Notes: a model not told the origin generated them from the sequence alone. Shown: positions 29,898-61,193, counted from the stretch's first letter. The stretch is DNA of 64,000 nucleotides from Squalus acanthias (GCA_030390025.1 CM059427.1:187860001-187924000), one strand, 5' to 3'. Program-made: numbers and translations.

Positions 29898-29987
29898 TCG
29901 GTTTTACTTCTGGTGGTTTTCTGGTGCTATATATATATCTATATCTATATGTATATTTCTTACAGGGAAAGAGACGGAATCTGTGAA

Positions 29988-30075
29988 ATGAGGCTACGAT
30001 TTTTCTGCAACAAAATGCCAGCTGGTTTGATGTTCAGTTTCTTTGTGTTTCTACTTCCGTCTGTTTTCACACAAA
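29988..30075 (+). CDS. IgSF receptor, signal-peptide exon (exon 29966-30075, ATG 29988; alternative ATG 30015)
   Basis: Acceptor tatttcttacAG at 29965; MRLRFFCNKMPAGLMFSFFVFLLPSVFTQ; phase-1 donor GTAAGT at 30076, in frame with D1. Confidence 0.75.
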
Positions 30076-30204
30076 GTAAGTGCCTTATTTCCACCAATCA
30101 CAGTCATATTGTTTTACTTTATCATAGTGTTTAATGAATTCACCCAGCAAGTATTCAGCAAGCAAGTCAGGTCTTAATTTTCATGTCCCTGCTCCTTTAA
30201 ACAG

Positions 30205-30906
30205 GGGGTAGAGTTTCCGCTTTGGGCTCAATCGGCGATTCCGCCACAAATTGCGCACAAAATTGCGCCCGTTTAGAAAAAATTTTTTCTCGAGTTTCCG
30301 CTCAAACTCATTTGCATATCGGCGAAAGCAAAATCTGTCCTGAAGCAGCGCAATTGGGCAACGTTTTAAAACATCATTTTATTTTTTAAAGTTGCTTTAA
30401 AAAGTATTCCTTGATATATTTAAAAATGGTAACTCGGTGCAGTTTGCATAATACAGCTGGAAATGGGTTTAACAAAAAATAAGCATTTTAAATCAGTGTC
30501 AGTCCACCACCTGTGAGTAATCTGATTTTAAATTATTAAAATTTGTGGAACAGTAGTGAGTTCCTTATAAAAAGTAATCATTCAAAATCATTCAAAAACA
30601 TACCTATTAGTGTCCTTACGCACAAAAGTTCCAGCTTATTTTTTGGAGCCTCCTCGAAGGCCTGCAAATGAGCGCAATTAGTGGAAACTCCCAATGCTGA
30701 TTAATTCATCCTGGGGGCGTGGCCAGTTTTGTGGGCGGGGCCAGCTTCCAGTGCGATGGTTTTAAAAGTAACGCAAAAGATCGCGGAAACTCTAGATCTG
30801 TTGAACGCAATTTCGCTTAAAATTCCGCGATCTTTTGCACCGTTTACGCTGATATCGGGGAAATCGTGCTGAAAAAAGCAGCGTAATCGAGCGGAAACGC
30901 CAGGCC
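30205..30906 (+). mobile_element. PIF/Harbinger-type MITE, family B copy 2
   Basis: GGGGTAGAGTTTCCGC ... GCGGAAACGCCAGGCC termini; homologous to the other two copies. Confidence 0.78.
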
Positions 30907-33205
30907 GCTGTGTAAGTTCACTTTTCAGAGTCCAACAGTGGAACAACTTAATAAAATGAAAAATGTTAGCAGATTTCACATTGCTCTTCAATTGCTTTTC
31001 CCGATCTATCTATTAATCTCTCTATCTGTCAATACATCTACTCTTGCATGCAGCAAACTTCCATCAGAGCATTTTCGGTATTCTATGATATGTTATATTT
31101 GATCATTCAACAGCTTAACAGATTGCATGTGGTATAGAATGGGTCAAAAGTAAAAACAATATTAAAATGTTAATAAATGTTAAAATTAGGAATTATTGAG
31201 AATCATTTTTTTGTTCGAGGCTGTGCGACATATAAAAGTTACAGTTGGGTAAAACATCATTTGAAAAGGTTTGAAGGTTTGTCGCTGATCCTCACTTTGG
31301 GTCACATCTTGGTTTAGTGTCCAAAGGTGTTTAAACATCACTGTGAATATAGTGTGCACAGAGCCATTGTGGTTTTGGTAATTGTGATGTGAGCTGGTAT
31401 TTAATCAAGACTTACAGACACATGGGATTTACTGCTTTAGATCACTTCCCTTGTGAAAATGTAGATAAAATAATGGTTACAATGAGGATTAGTTTACTGT
31501 TACCCTTGAAATGAAGGAAGATAATGATTCAAAGGTGGAAATGTAGTTCAGGGAATGATAACGATGAACTATTAACTGCATGATGTGACCACTGTCACCA
31601 GAGACCACCTGGAAGTATCCAAATGCATTAACGTTAAATGTCACTGTCACAGCCACAGTTGTCACCTTTCACAGATAAGGCAAAGCACCTGGTGGAAAGA
31701 GGCTGCAAGTCAGGATCCAAGAGCTGGTTTATCTCTGTCACTGTGTCTTATCTGACAAGGGGGGATGATGCAGGAACTTCCTGATCGCTGCCCACCTCAG
31801 GAAACCCCGTCACAGGACAAACGGGGTGGAGACCTGACATAACCGTATCCTGCACCGATTTATCTCCCCGAGCTCCTGTCCACCTTGATAATGCCCCCTG
31901 TAGATCAGGAATCGCGAGGAGATTTGGAGCCTTTATTTTCTGTAACAAGAAATTTAGCCATGACCTCTTTTTTTATTTTGATTACTTTTTGTAATAATAA
32001 TGTATGTTACATAGAATTACAAAGTATTTTACTGCACAGAAACATCTCCCTCATGTACTTATCTATGTTTAGAAAGCTCTGGTAATAGATACACAGAATA
32101 TCTACTGGAAGTGTTCTGTTTTTCCCTGTAACAGTGCCTGCAGTGAAGGTGACATGATACAGTGCTTTCTCCTCATGTATTAGTGCTTCATTGTAACCTT
32201 CTCTGGACTGAACTCCTCAATGAAGGAGCTTTGCCAGCTTCTTGGGATTGTAATGGGAGAGGATTTCACTCTCCCTTCTTGCCCAATTTTGGATAGATTG
32301 TGGTCGGCAGGGGCAGAAAGTGGGGATGGGGATCTGGCGGGCTGCTCCCTGCAGATTGTCGTCACTTCACTGAATATATGGACCCAAATATGGAGAGATT
32401 TATTCAAATTGCGTGGAGAGGCCAAGTGTTATCAGATGTTACATTCACCGTCATTACTGCCATAACAATGCTGGAACACAAGGGACAGCAGCATGTTCCC
32501 GGCATCTAGCGTTGTGTTGGCTTGTGGGAGGGGGTTTCAATTTCAAACATCTATCTGAAGTAAAGCAATTGATCATGATCAAAGCAATTTGATCCCTCCC
32601 TCTCCCAGGTGGGTCCCTCGGATCAAAGCACGTGTCCTGCTGGGAGCCCACAATAATTATGGAAATTATGCTGATCTCAGGAAATTCCCCGGGGTTCACG
32701 GTTTGGGAAGACAGGCGGGCACGGAGTCTGTCACGCTGACCTATGGGCAGATTATGGCCAAGTGGAAAACCCTGCCTCCCTTTGTTATCGGTAATCCTGT
32801 GGGTAGCCTGGTCACTGGTGGTCCAGGAGAACCAACAACGTACTGGGCATTGCACAAGAGGAGGGGAGCTCACTTGTAGAGATCGCTGACCTGATTTTTG
32901 AGCCTGAAGTGATATGACTGCACCAGTACTGTATTCAGTTTTAGGAGAATACTGATTATTGTGACGGTATTTCAGATTTCCCAACAATATGGGAGTAACG
33001 ATTCCCCTTCCACACTCCCAGTAAATGCTGGAAATACGGATTGTGAAATTGGACACTGCAGGCCCACGAGGTCAGAGTGCAGTGGCAGAAATTCACCCTC
33101 TAATGTCCTAAAGTATCAGTGGATTAGGCCAGATTATTCCAGACAGACAGCTCTTCACCGGGGTGTGTATGTGTCATTGCTGAATCCGTTGTATATAAAA
33201 AATAT

Positions 33206-33941
33206 GGCCCGAAAATTAGACCTAATACAGGAGATTACGCACTGTGTACTCTCGCGTATTAGGTCCCGAAGTGCCGGTTTCTTGCATGCACTGCGCATGC
33301 GCGGGAAACCGGCACTTCGGGTATTGCGAAGGGGGCAGTTCCTAAGTGAACCACGTGCGCACGACAGGTTGCGCGCACGCAGTGCACTTAGTTTTTTTTT
33401 CAGGTTTGAACGCGCAGGTAAGTGTTGAAGATTTTACACATGAAGAAAGCAGGCGTAAGACCCCCTTTTAACAAGGTAAGTAGTTAATTAAGTATTATTT
33501 TAAATATTTTTCAACAGGTTTATCTTTTTTAGAGACTTTAAAGAAAGGTAAGTTTATTTTTCAAAAATTTAAATTTTTGTTTAAAGTGGTTAATTTATTT
33601 AACTATAGTTATTTTATTAATGTGATGGCTTTTTAAAAAAATTTAATTGAGGTTTAGCTGTTCTTTTGGGGGCTTGTTGTATTCATAGTTTTGACAGCTC
33701 TTCCTGTCAAAACTATGAATGAAAGATGGTGTGCTGCCATTGGCTCTAACTGGCCCACGTGATCCCAGAGGTCGCATCGAACTAATTGCGCCTCTGGGAC
33801 ACGCACACACTGCACGCCGGCACCAGGGAGAGGCCCAGGAACTGAAGTTCGTGTGGGCCAAAACCATAAAGGCAGGCGCGGAGTGCGATATCTCGGGGGA
33901 TCCTTACCCCGCGGCAACCATCGAAGTCCAATTTCTGGGCC
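33206..33941 (+). mobile_element. PIF/Harbinger-type MITE, family A copy 2, TSD TAT
   Basis: TIR GGCCCGAAAATT / AATTTCTGGGCC; TAT on both flanks. Confidence 0.88.
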
Positions 33942-59596: not shown

Positions 59597-59634
59597 TCAC
59601 AAGCTTTCGGAGTTACAACTCCTTCGTCGGGTGA
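59597..59634 (-). ncRNA. Hammerhead-like motif, variant core CCGACGA
   Basis: Exact reverse complement of 60162-60199. Confidence 0.6.
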
Positions 59635-60161
59635 AGTGAGGAGATACAGAATCGTCAAAGCATATATAGATAGAGAACATTGCATGTGTAACTTACAATT
59701 GCAGACAACTGAATTCAATCAACCTGACTGTTTATCTGCCGAGGTGTGATAAAGTTAATCAGGTCAGCCAGGAAGGTACCACATCAAAGACATAGCAAGA
59801 TACAACTGAGACAATGAGGTGGAATCGCATGGGGTCTAACGTGTCAAAAGCTGCCGTCTGTATGTAAAACGATTAACTTTAAAAATTTTACTTTTTTACT
59901 GGGAATCACATCTGTGGACAAGCCAACGACGACTCGAGTCCGGATCACGTCATGTATCGTGACATAAACCCAAGATCCCGATTGAGACCGTCTTCATGAG
60001 TGCGGAACTTGGCTATCAGTTTCTGCTCGATGATTTTGCGTTGTCGTGTTTTCCTAAGGCCTAAACAGTCAGGTTGATTGAATTCAGTTGTCTGCAATTG
60101 TAAGTTACACATGCATTGTTCTCTATCTATATATGCTTTGACGATTCTGTATCTCCTCACT

Positions 60162-60199
60162 TCACCCGACGAAGGAGTTGTAACTCCGAAAGCTTGTGA
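60162..60199 (+). ncRNA. Hammerhead-like motif, variant core CCGACGA
   Basis: tcac-CCGACGA-a-ggagtt-gt-aactcc-GAAA-gc-TT-gtga. Confidence 0.6.
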
Positions 60200-61097
60200 T
60201 TTAAAATAAAACTGTTGGACTATAACCTGGTGTTGTGCGACCTCTCAATTTTGTCCACCCCAGTCCAACACCGGCATCTCCGCATCTTTTCATCCTCCCA
60301 GGGGAATGCCCATCCACACTTTTCCTACCTCCTTTTGAAACCTGGACTGAGATCGTATACTTGGTTTGTGGCACATCATGGACACAAACTCATTCCATGG
60401 TAGTGTCTTGTTGCTGTAATATGCATTGTGGTGTCATTCCTGAAGAAGGATTGTCATGGATTAATTCTAGCTAAATATTATGGCCAGGAAGATATTATAC
60501 AAATTTTCTTTCCTAATGTTGTGCCAGTTTTCTCCTCTTTCCTCTTTTCCTCCCATGTTGGTGCTGATCTTGACTTTGTGCGATAGTGTAAAATTTGTAA
60601 CAGTGAGTCGACAGCCCGTTTTACATCTTTCTCTATTTTTATTTCCATCCGTATTACACTATCGCACACTCCCTCGTTGAGTGCAGTTCTCATTCAAATA
60701 GCCATTATTCAAGTATTCAAGTACAAGCCTAGACAATGAGGATCATTCGCCTATTGTACAGCGGGAAGCATCACAGCTGAATCGGATCCTTTACTTACCA
60801 GTCATCTGCACACATCTCCTCTCCAGAAGGAATCACCGGATTGGAACCAGGAAGTAGAACCCTGTGTGATTTTTTTTTTCCCTGTCCCTAACGGAAGGGA
60901 CAGTTGCAGCACTCCAATGTTCCTGAGTGAGGTCAGTTAACTTGGATTAGGAATTAAACCGAGGACCTTCTGGCCTGTATGACTTAATGGTAAATCAGAC
61001 AGTAGGGTTATCTACTGGGTCATTAGGGAAGCTTAATTTTTTTTTTAAAAGTTAATCTATAAACTAAATGTTAAATCTATGCTTATTCGTCTGACAG

Positions 61098-61193
61098 GTG
61101 ATTACACCATTGTCGTTATTTTCGGGAGTCTGGCTCTTCTCCTCATCATTATCCTGGCAGTGGTGCTGTGTCTAAGAAGGAGCAAGGTTGCAG
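61098..61193 (+). CDS. IgSF receptor, transmembrane exon
   Basis: Acceptor ttcgtctgacAG, donor CAG|GTAAGA, 96 nt phase 1-1. SDYTIVVIFGSLALLLIIILAVVLCLRRSKVA, in frame with D4. Confidence 0.88.

Follow-up and report, generated by a model that had tools for sequence, protein, structure and literature searches.

A gene of Squalus acanthias from an unnamed family of CD4-like V-C2-V-C2 receptors, probably of the inhibitory type

A gene for a receptor with four immunoglobulin (Ig) domains lies on the plus strand of a 64,000-nucleotide (nt) stretch of Squalus acanthias DNA (GCA_030390025.1 CM059427.1:187860001-187924000; hereafter the window, the whole of which is free of N). Judged by sequence comparison, this gene is a member of group A of an unnamed multigene family, the sequences of which are already public, almost all under placeholder names. 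It is not the orthologue of any described gene, and the finding is a real one. Its exons are established, as are its membership of the family, the fold, and the motifs carried by relatives. The gene in the window probably encodes the ectodomain and transmembrane part of a receptor of the inhibitory type, within a family of paired receptors built on CD4-like rods.

Gene structure and family membership

Six exons (E1-E6), all with canonical splice sites and phase-1 junctions, were found where a first-pass annotation of the window had placed them. The search was a mechanical scan for stop-free phase-1 segments between AG and GT, of the lengths stated in that annotation; E4 was the sole candidate of its length (339 nt) within the searched span, and the other exons were chosen among several candidates by Ig-like translation and agreement with relatives. 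The coding part of E1 (29988..30075, 88 nt) comprises the ATG at 29988 and a signal peptide, 29 codons and one base in all, followed by the donor GTAAGT; it contains an additional in-frame ATG at 30015, and its leader is 92% identical over 26 amino acids to those of Pristiophorus P0117 and P0138 (P numbers designate stored database proteins). Position 29966, previously taken as the start of the gene, proved to be only the base following an upstream AG. E2 (34046..34387, 342 nt) encodes D1, a V-set Ig domain with no cysteine and seven tryptophans; E3 (37341..37610, 270 nt) encodes D2, a C2-type domain with YTC in strand F; E4 (50496..50834) encodes D3, a V-type domain with the canonical cysteine pair and YTC; and E5 (51742..52011, 270 nt) encodes D4, a C2-type domain with a cysteine pair and WTC in strand F. 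E6 (61098..61193, 96 nt) supplies a stalk remnant, an uncharged transmembrane segment and the juxtamembrane sequence CLRRSKVA, the exon ending in ...VVLCLRRSKVA. The WTC of D4 and the YTC of D2, the uncharged transmembrane segment, the juxtamembrane cysteine before RRSK and the eight N-x-S/T N-glycosylation sequons, all of them inside D1-D4, were recovered as first described.

The acceptors of E2-E6 each show a pyrimidine tract and AG, and every one of the six exons stops ahead of GT(A/G)(A/G)G, that is, GTAAG, GTGAG or GTAGG. Each of E2-E6 is laid out as two bases, whole codons and one base, which yields the phase-1 junctions, and the summed exon lengths come to 1405 coding nt, or 468 codons and one base. 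Each exon was translated and searched separately, with no joined protein used; the split codons, read by eye, would encode R, V, D, V and S, of which R and both V match relatives. D2 and D4 are paralogous to one another (29% identity, E 1.5e-6). The transmembrane exon (61098-61193) is 15 nt, or five codons (FKHTN), short of its relatives, reading DYTIVVIF where these have (G/D)YTFKHTNVVIF; the shortfall shortens the stalk and leaves the transmembrane helix whole. As already remarked in the first-pass annotation, the tail is not visible in the window: no tail exon was found in 61194-64000 by motif scan or by tblastn with the five closest tails, and the most likely reading is that the tail exons lie beyond base 64000.

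The Ig exons and the transmembrane exon all find their best matches, by a wide margin, in family members. The D1 exon is 73-76% identical to D1 of P0057 and P0119, the D2 exon 89% identical to P0004, the D3 and D4 exons 85% and 89% identical to P0087 (residues 568-679 and 681-769, respectively), and the transmembrane exon 77-80% identical to the corresponding segments of P0087, P0074 and P0089. A phmmer search of 1.84 billion representatives with the D3 exon as query returned 53 proteins at E<=1e-3, 27 at E<=1e-10 and 9 at E<=1e-30, ranging from E 7.7e-146. The 30 matched representatives that were looked up are called 'uncharacterized', 'hypothetical' or 'Ig-like domain-containing', apart from two without a usable name, and one of the clusters also contained an isoform named CEACAM5-like. 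They come from cartilaginous fishes (Scyliorhinus, Pristiophorus, Heptranchias, Chiloscyllium, Heterodontus, Mobula, Narcine and Callorhinchus) and from bony fishes (Latimeria, Polypterus, Acipenser, Anguilla, Synaphobranchus, Megalops, Phoxinus, Umbra and a few other teleosts), with identities of 23-33% in coelacanth, bichir, sturgeon and teleosts.

A profile built from 11 full-length members matched 164 proteins among 8000 scored candidates. Among the 120 of these 164 matches listed, all are elasmobranch or chimaera, consecutive LOC numbers recur within many species, and many models have 850-1030 residues, corresponding to eight Ig domains; the few that bear a name beyond uncharacterized or hypothetical are called obscurin-like (2), VCAM1-like (2) and CD276 homolog (1). 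A bony-fish profile gave 31 proteins, from eels, tarpon and salmonids together with one centipede protein (E 7e-7), and a search with a cyprinid member gave 67, mostly from cyprinids and otherwise from loaches, catfishes, characins and mormyrids, two carp proteins among them being named after the zebrafish clone-based gene si:ch73-7i4.3. A few family members are labelled CEACAM-like by NCBI, and the names CD4, LAG-3, G6F-like and DICP occur nowhere among the listed relatives. Many members are eight-Ig proteins in which V-C2-V-C2 is present twice (e.g., P0074, P0088 and P0054), and the nurse shark entry V9NJF3 ('obscurin-like protein', 916 amino acids) is likewise an eight-Ig family member; P0001 of Scyliorhinus canicula (1710 amino acids) has four D3-like stretches and is for that reason probably a merged gene model.

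The lineages were examined in a quick maximum-likelihood tree made up solely of 35 chosen family members, which carried a midpoint root and, as its only support values, the Shimodaira-Hasegawa-like approximate likelihood-ratio test (SH-aLRT). Ray-finned fish proteins form one group (98), and the cartilaginous-fish proteins together with the coelacanth form the other (98); the cartilaginous group splits into two ancient lineages, A (98) and B (99), with a Callorhinchus protein in both. Given that an upstream paralogue is present in the window and that LOC numbers are consecutive in other species, the window gene belongs to a tandem family, being one copy of a large set with inhibitory, activating-type and eight-Ig forms, a setting that the first-pass annotation had missed. 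No description of this family was found in the literature searched on shark CD4/LAG-3, G6F-like, DICP and V-C2-V-C2/WxC receptors; neither was any paper mentioning ch73-7i4.3, nor 'obscurin-like' in the nurse shark papers listed. The first-pass annotation was right to propose a separate, essentially undescribed lineage, its relatives being placeholder-named and neither CD4 nor LAG-3, and no one-to-one orthologue of a described gene emerged from the exon searches and name look-ups. It was wrong to confine that lineage to chondrichthyans, as members are present in coelacanth, bichir, sturgeon, eels, tarpon, salmonids, cyprinids and other ostariophysans.

Tails, transmembrane types and the paired pattern

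Full-length relatives with the window's type of transmembrane segment continue into tails like ...LYSNANE...EDIHY(A/G)S(V/I)...SSVIYA(Q/K)I. Motifs were counted, with loose patterns on automatic gene models, in the tails of 101 stored members having an uncharged transmembrane-like stretch and at least 40 cytoplasmic residues. At least one motif resembling the immunoreceptor tyrosine-based inhibitory motif (ITIM) is present in 91 of the 101 tails and at least two in 58, and YxN is present in 73; Cx(C/H) is found in none, whereas (F/Y)xxL(D/E) and the pattern of the tyrosine-based activation motif of immunoreceptors (ITAM; Y-x-x-L/I, 6-12 residues, Y-x-x-L/I) are each found in a single tail. P0087, P0074, P0089 and P0075, the best matches of the window's transmembrane exon, all have ITIM tails, and the stretch EDIHYASV.F is identical in shark P0057 and cyprinid P0051. 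A second type, in which the transmembrane motif (G/A)Y(L/F)xV(K/R)L is combined with a short tail, accounts for 17 of 162 members. That motif and both ITIM motifs are never found together (0/162), and 90 of the 162, including many partial models, have neither the K/R motif nor two ITIM motifs.

In the tree, the ITIM and lysine-bearing forms found in one species are paired with each other (SH-aLRT 99 in Heptranchias and 99 in Pristiophorus), and among the sequencing runs considered below, an E5-like exon is joined to a lysine-type transmembrane exon in a contig of run X1 and to an ITIM-type transmembrane exon in a contig of run X3. The tree and the tails together form the pattern of a paired-receptor family evolving through local duplication or conversion. 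KIR, LILR and SIRP, as well as NITR and LITR of fishes, are paired inhibitory/activating Ig receptor families; like these and like DICP, the window family consists of tandem clusters with near-identical ectodomains, has either an ITIM tail or a basic residue in the transmembrane segment, and contains copies that are more alike within than between species. It differs from them in its ectodomain of CD4-like V-C2 rods. By its transmembrane exon the window copy appears to be of the inhibitory type, and an inhibitory tail is predicted for it from its relatives. The earlier suggestion that an uncharged transmembrane segment implies a signalling tail of the receptor's own accords with this, in that relatives with such a segment carry YxN and ITIM-like motifs.

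Fold and relation to named receptors

In Pfam, D2 and D4 score above Ig thresholds (D2 as Ig_2 and Ig_3) and D3 has a weak V-set match, while D1 gives nothing significant (only Receptor_2B4 at E 0.17). Likewise, single exons compared with solved structures gave general Ig matches only for D2, D3 and D4 and none for D1, and the ESM Atlas gave no usable match for the D1 exon. The AlphaFold model of D1 is a V domain with a predicted local distance difference test (pLDDT) value of 92.2, which Foldseek matches to V domains at template-modelling scores of 0.70-0.75, the nearest being MPZL1, 2B4, P0, CD84 and NTB-A, with CD48 also among them.

For the protein as a whole, the 11-member profile was run against 177,635 PDB sequences and placed human LAG-3 first (E 4.7e-14, 55 bits), with the WxC aligned, followed by pIgR (49 bits), NCAM and titin (46) and CD4 (43). 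Whole-protein structural tests used the Heptranchias database relative P0057 rather than the window's joined protein. The AlphaFold model of P0057 has a pLDDT of 75 overall and mostly 77-96 in its four domains, and single strands (123-138 and 329-344) span both V-C2 borders. In the Foldseek ranking, an engineered diabody precedes LAG-3 and CD4, which occupy places 2-4 and 6-8. In VIA-align, four-domain CD4 structures reach Z 16.9, 16.5, 15.2 and 14.5 (root-mean-square deviation 12.0-21.6 A over 315-333 residues), the next protein reaching 13.8; rat CD4 D3-D4 (1cid) superposes with Z 13.1, 170 of 177 residues fitting at 2.6 A, and LAG-3 scores Z 12.2 with a deviation of 21.7 A and 297 residues aligned.

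The available portions of a study of shark CD4 and LAG-3 (Takizawa et al., 2023; PMC10768021) describe WxC in strand F of both D2 and D4, and name as a rare hallmark of the CD4/LAG-3 family a strand that continues from strand G of the V domain into strand A of the C2 domain. There, a tail spread over multiple exons with the LCK-binding motif Cx(C/H) characterizes CD4, and a single-exon tail with (F/Y)xxL(D/E) characterizes LAG-3; one LAG-3 and one CD4 gene stand head to tail in a conserved region, single-copy by default, and automatic annotation labels the shark genes by those names. In sharks, according to the same portions, neither gene has an intron within D1. A one-exon D1 is consequently uninformative, and the first-pass annotation's argument from a 'non-CD4 gene structure' falls away.

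A shark orthologue of CD4 or LAG-3 would have the V-C2-V-C2 order with WxC in strand F of D4 (WTC in the window), the single strand from V strand G into C2 strand A seen in the P0057 model, and the one-exon D1 of the shark genes, and CD4 and LAG-3 are indeed the best profile and fold matches of the family among solved structures. This orthology is nevertheless close to refuted. D2 carries YxC, not WxC, throughout the family alignment, its Y and C being invariant in the 11 members; D1 is without a disulphide; and the relatives' tails, with Cx(C/H) in none and (F/Y)xxL(D/E) in one of the 101, match neither gene. The family comprises many tandem copies, activating-type and eight-Ig forms among them, as against one gene each by default (PMC10768021, available portions), and identity to CD4 and LAG-3 in the fold alignments is only 12-18%. 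None of 248 named proteins (30+120+31+67, from overlapping listings that include 120 of the 164 profile matches) is called CD4 or LAG-3, and 47 members compared with Pfam matched general Ig families only, among 25 of the 27 families matched. PF05790 (C2-set) is present on a CD4 cluster in the ESM Atlas. Because the tail tests fail and D2 has YxC, the unnamed family is neither CD4 nor LAG-3. The Pfam matches of the exons, the D1 model and the P0057 model uphold the first-pass classification as a V-C2-V-C2 receptor of the CD4/LAG-3-like architectural group.

Among named proteins, the closest relative appears to be G6F-like (G6fL), which is probably related to the family. In the available portions of its description (PMC3528668), G6fL is a thrombocyte collagen receptor with four Ig-like domains, one transmembrane segment, YxN and an ITAM split over two exons. 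Zebrafish G6fL (GU393012), grouped here with the G6F encoded in the mammalian major histocompatibility complex (MHC), resembles the family as a type I protein with four Ig-like domains, for which the window has four Ig exons and a transmembrane exon, and the YxN of the G6fL tail recurs in the 73 relatives' tails counted above. The nearest named ESM Atlas clusters to P0057 are 'g6f-like' (score 0.96, with 196 and 193 of 256 features), scores that serve as leads only, and sturgeon and bichir members (D3-exon matches at E 5.8e-12 and 2.7e-7) end in ...ENIYEN, which is the G6fL Y499 context as read from mutagenesis primers in the same paper and is present in 10 of 272 stored proteins. That the window gene should be the cartilaginous-fish counterpart of this ITAM-bearing teleost receptor is, for all these likenesses, very unlikely. 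The ITAM pattern is present in just one of the 101 tails and the two G6fL ITAM contexts in none of the 272 stored proteins, the shark and unnamed teleost genes having ITIM-like motifs or a transmembrane lysine instead. The shark ITIM-like motifs are nearly letter-identical with those of a different, unnamed teleost group (EDIHYASV.F of P0057 and P0051), to which the ENIYEN proteins, rather than to the shark genes, are sister in the quick tree. G6fL, moreover, is one thrombocyte gene as opposed to a large tandem family, in a comparison made by description.

The DICP family (diverse immunoglobulin domain-containing proteins) of bony fishes offers another parallel. According to the available portions of a preprint (bioRxiv 10.1101/2021.06.11.448072), DICPs comprise D1 and D2 domain types, in some cases as D1a-D2a-D1b-D2b, occur in clusters with either an ITIM tail or a charged transmembrane segment, and include a coelacanth candidate. 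Membership in that family is an extremely remote prospect for the window gene, however. DICP D1 and D2 are defined by C23, C104 and extra DICP cysteines, whereas the window's D1 has no cysteine and its D2, D3 and D4 have the canonical pair only; the charged transmembrane residue of bowfin is arginine, as opposed to lysine in the motif of the window family; none of the 67 relatives of the cyprinid member is named dicp; and DICPs are reported, in those portions, only from teleosts, holosteans and the coelacanth. The likeness to DICP drawn by the first-pass annotation was not borne out at the conserved D1 cysteines, the one feature tested, with DICP judged by description. CEACAM1 and the CD2/SLAM proteins, for their part, share with the window gene an N-terminal V domain without a disulphide, followed by C2; the D1 model lies near 2B4, CD84, NTB-A and CD48, and the profile aligns D1-D2 with CEACAM1 N-A1 (E 1e-8). 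In contrast to these proteins, D3 and D4 are of another type, and the likeness stands at the level of the general Ig fold. A CD2/SLAM or CEACAM reading was dropped, given that whole-protein matches favour CD4 and LAG-3.

The window copy, its neighbours and its meaning

Fifteen sequencing runs were available, all as Logan contigs and none recorded as RNA (the label 'RNA?' is the tool's guess), and four of them (X1, X3, X13 and X14) were compared with window positions 50300-52250, contigs being accepted from 90% likeness. In X1 and X3, depth is 112-1720 across E4 and E5 against 0-3 on the outer flanks, and in X13 and X14 exons and flanks have similar depth, with an intronic repeat reaching 145,494; from these patterns, the behaviour of X1 and X3 is RNA-like and that of X13 and X14 DNA-like. 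A contig of X3 with a depth of 244 jumps from 50834 to 51742 with GT..AG ends, which is the exact predicted E4-E5 junction, and contigs depart from the genome at the predicted borders 50496 (three in X3) and 52011 (one each in X1 and X3). Alternative E5 borders at 51748-52017 were ruled out, the contig joint and the loose ends falling at 51742 and 52011. Beyond 50496, the contig letters, read by eye, are the final stretch of a D6-type exon from an eight-domain paralogue and not the window's E3; past 52011, the X1 contig leads into a lysine-type transmembrane exon and the X3 contig into an ITIM-type one that retains the five codons absent from E6. In view of the 90% acceptance level, these contigs show exons of this kind, not those of the window copy in particular, to be spliced as predicted. 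The first-pass exon joints are in this way borne out in part: the E4-E5 junction is seen in a contig, at 50496 and 52011 the contigs pass into paralogue exons, and the joints E1-E2, E2-E3, E3-E4 and E5-E6 of the window gene stand as predictions.

Several observations weigh against a whole, inhibitory-type receptor with a CD4-like ectodomain. Over 50300-52250 in the four runs, no contig joins E3-E4 or E5-E6 of the window copy, and the contigs abutting E4 and E5 run on into paralogue-type exons. The transmembrane exon is without five codons that relatives possess; the term 'inhibitory' draws on the homology of this 31-residue exon, the tail being outside the window. The motif counts were made with loose patterns on automatic gene models. 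CD4 and LAG-3 are absent among the best 50 Foldseek rows for the D1 model, and their lead for the whole protein is modest, at 55 versus 49 bits in the profile search and about one to two orders of E-value in Foldseek. Finally, D1 and D2 resemble domains 1 and 2 of long (7-8-Ig) paralogues, and D3, D4 and the transmembrane segment resemble domains 7 and 8 and the transmembrane segment of P0087 (85, 89 and 77%), as compared with 64-67% for D3 and 69-71% for D4 against four-domain members, except for a partial 80-residue D3 match of 75% to P0117. On this sequence evidence the window copy may stem from deletion of four middle exons or from recombination between neighbouring genes, and, because all exons are phase 1, such a shortened form still reads through.

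The strongest form of this objection is that the copy is a decaying or hybrid remnant, in which leader, D1 and D2 were left beside D7, D8 and the transmembrane exon once the middle Ig exons had been lost, and from which no four-domain protein is made. Such a history would suit not only the resemblance to P0087 but also the 12.9-kb E3-E4 intron, which is full of reverse-transcriptase pieces and in which tblastn found no Ig exon, as well as the D6-type origin of the X3 contigs reaching 50496, the short transmembrane exon, and an upstream neighbour with K replaced by Q and a frame problem. It is nonetheless unlikely, considering that the six exons are open, with intact splice sites and phase 1 throughout, that those near-invariant family residues compared by eye with the consensus are kept, and that four-domain members of the same layout are common, being predicted in many genomes.

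The upstream neighbour is a tandem paralogue of which two plus-strand exons were recognized. Its transmembrane exon (2744..2854), found by tblastn with P0004, P0008, P0020 and P0024, is of the activating type, 'GYL(L/F)VKL', with Q for K; its last exon (3623..3754), found by tblastn and frame reading, reads ...SNCRNPDEATGNETGD...stop. With canonical sites, reading enters this exon shifted by one base from the homologous frame and yields a 13-codon tail, and the paralogue, of the lysine-transmembrane type, is possibly a decaying copy.

Transposon remains are plentiful in the window. The D4-transmembrane intron contains a Tigger/pogo-like DNA transposon remnant at 53612-55695 (plus strand) with CENP-B_N, HTH_Tnp_Tc5 and DDE_1 domains, its DDE domain split across two open reading frames. 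Reverse-transcriptase/endonuclease reading-frame fragments of long interspersed nuclear elements (LINEs) are present at 15047-20189, 27043-29628, 38637-47202, 52430-53536 and 56189-58057, mostly on the minus strand and within the gene's introns, RVT_1 being confirmed for three; these fragments explain why GC skew is strongly negative at 42-48 kb and 56-58 kb. The E4-E5 intron holds a very high-copy short repeat (50870-51700, with a peak at 51092-51223 where the summed depth in X13 attains the maximum given above), and all four runs contain a joint 50869>51704, so that the 834-base insert must be missing from other copies or alleles.

If the probable reading is correct, the protein would be a type I membrane receptor whose ectodomain consists of a pair of stiff V-C2 rods and has WxC in its final C2 domain. 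By homology, the missing downstream exons would provide a tail containing, besides a Grb2-type YxN, two or three ITIM-like tyrosines (...IHY[AG]S[IV]..., ...SVIYA[QK]I), which, once phosphorylated, would recruit phosphatases with Src homology 2 (SH2) domains and so damp the carrier cell. Sister genes with a near-identical ectodomain, a transmembrane lysine and a short tail would couple to an ITAM adaptor, and the genes together would constitute a paired inhibitory/activating receptor system. The tail of the window copy, the phosphatase and adaptor coupling, and the function are what we infer from these homologies.

A bolder proposal, and a long shot, is that this family and G6F-like are the surviving stock that gave rise to CD4 and LAG-3, for which only a lamprey 'CD4-like' molecule and trout CD4-2 are discussed as possible ancestors in the available portions of Takizawa et al. 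(2023; PMC10768021). An ancient paired system of CD4-type V-C2 rods would then have comprised two lineages before the divergence of chimaeras and sharks, MHC-like or other polymorphic ligands on cell surfaces may even now be recognized by its members, and CD4 (activating) and LAG-3 (inhibitory) would be a pair, fixed and single-copy, that descends from a system of this sort.

No well-known receptors other than CD4 and LAG-3 consist of two V-C2 rods with WxC, and the origin of these two is unsettled; a family conserved from chimaeras to cyprinids would provide a concrete outgroup for rooting their evolution. Opposite signalling designs are set in this family on near-identical ectodomains, and proteins with a G6F-like tail motif are included in it. 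These genes would also represent new candidate innate-type immune receptors in cartilaginous fishes, which have so far been known mainly for the absence of such families.

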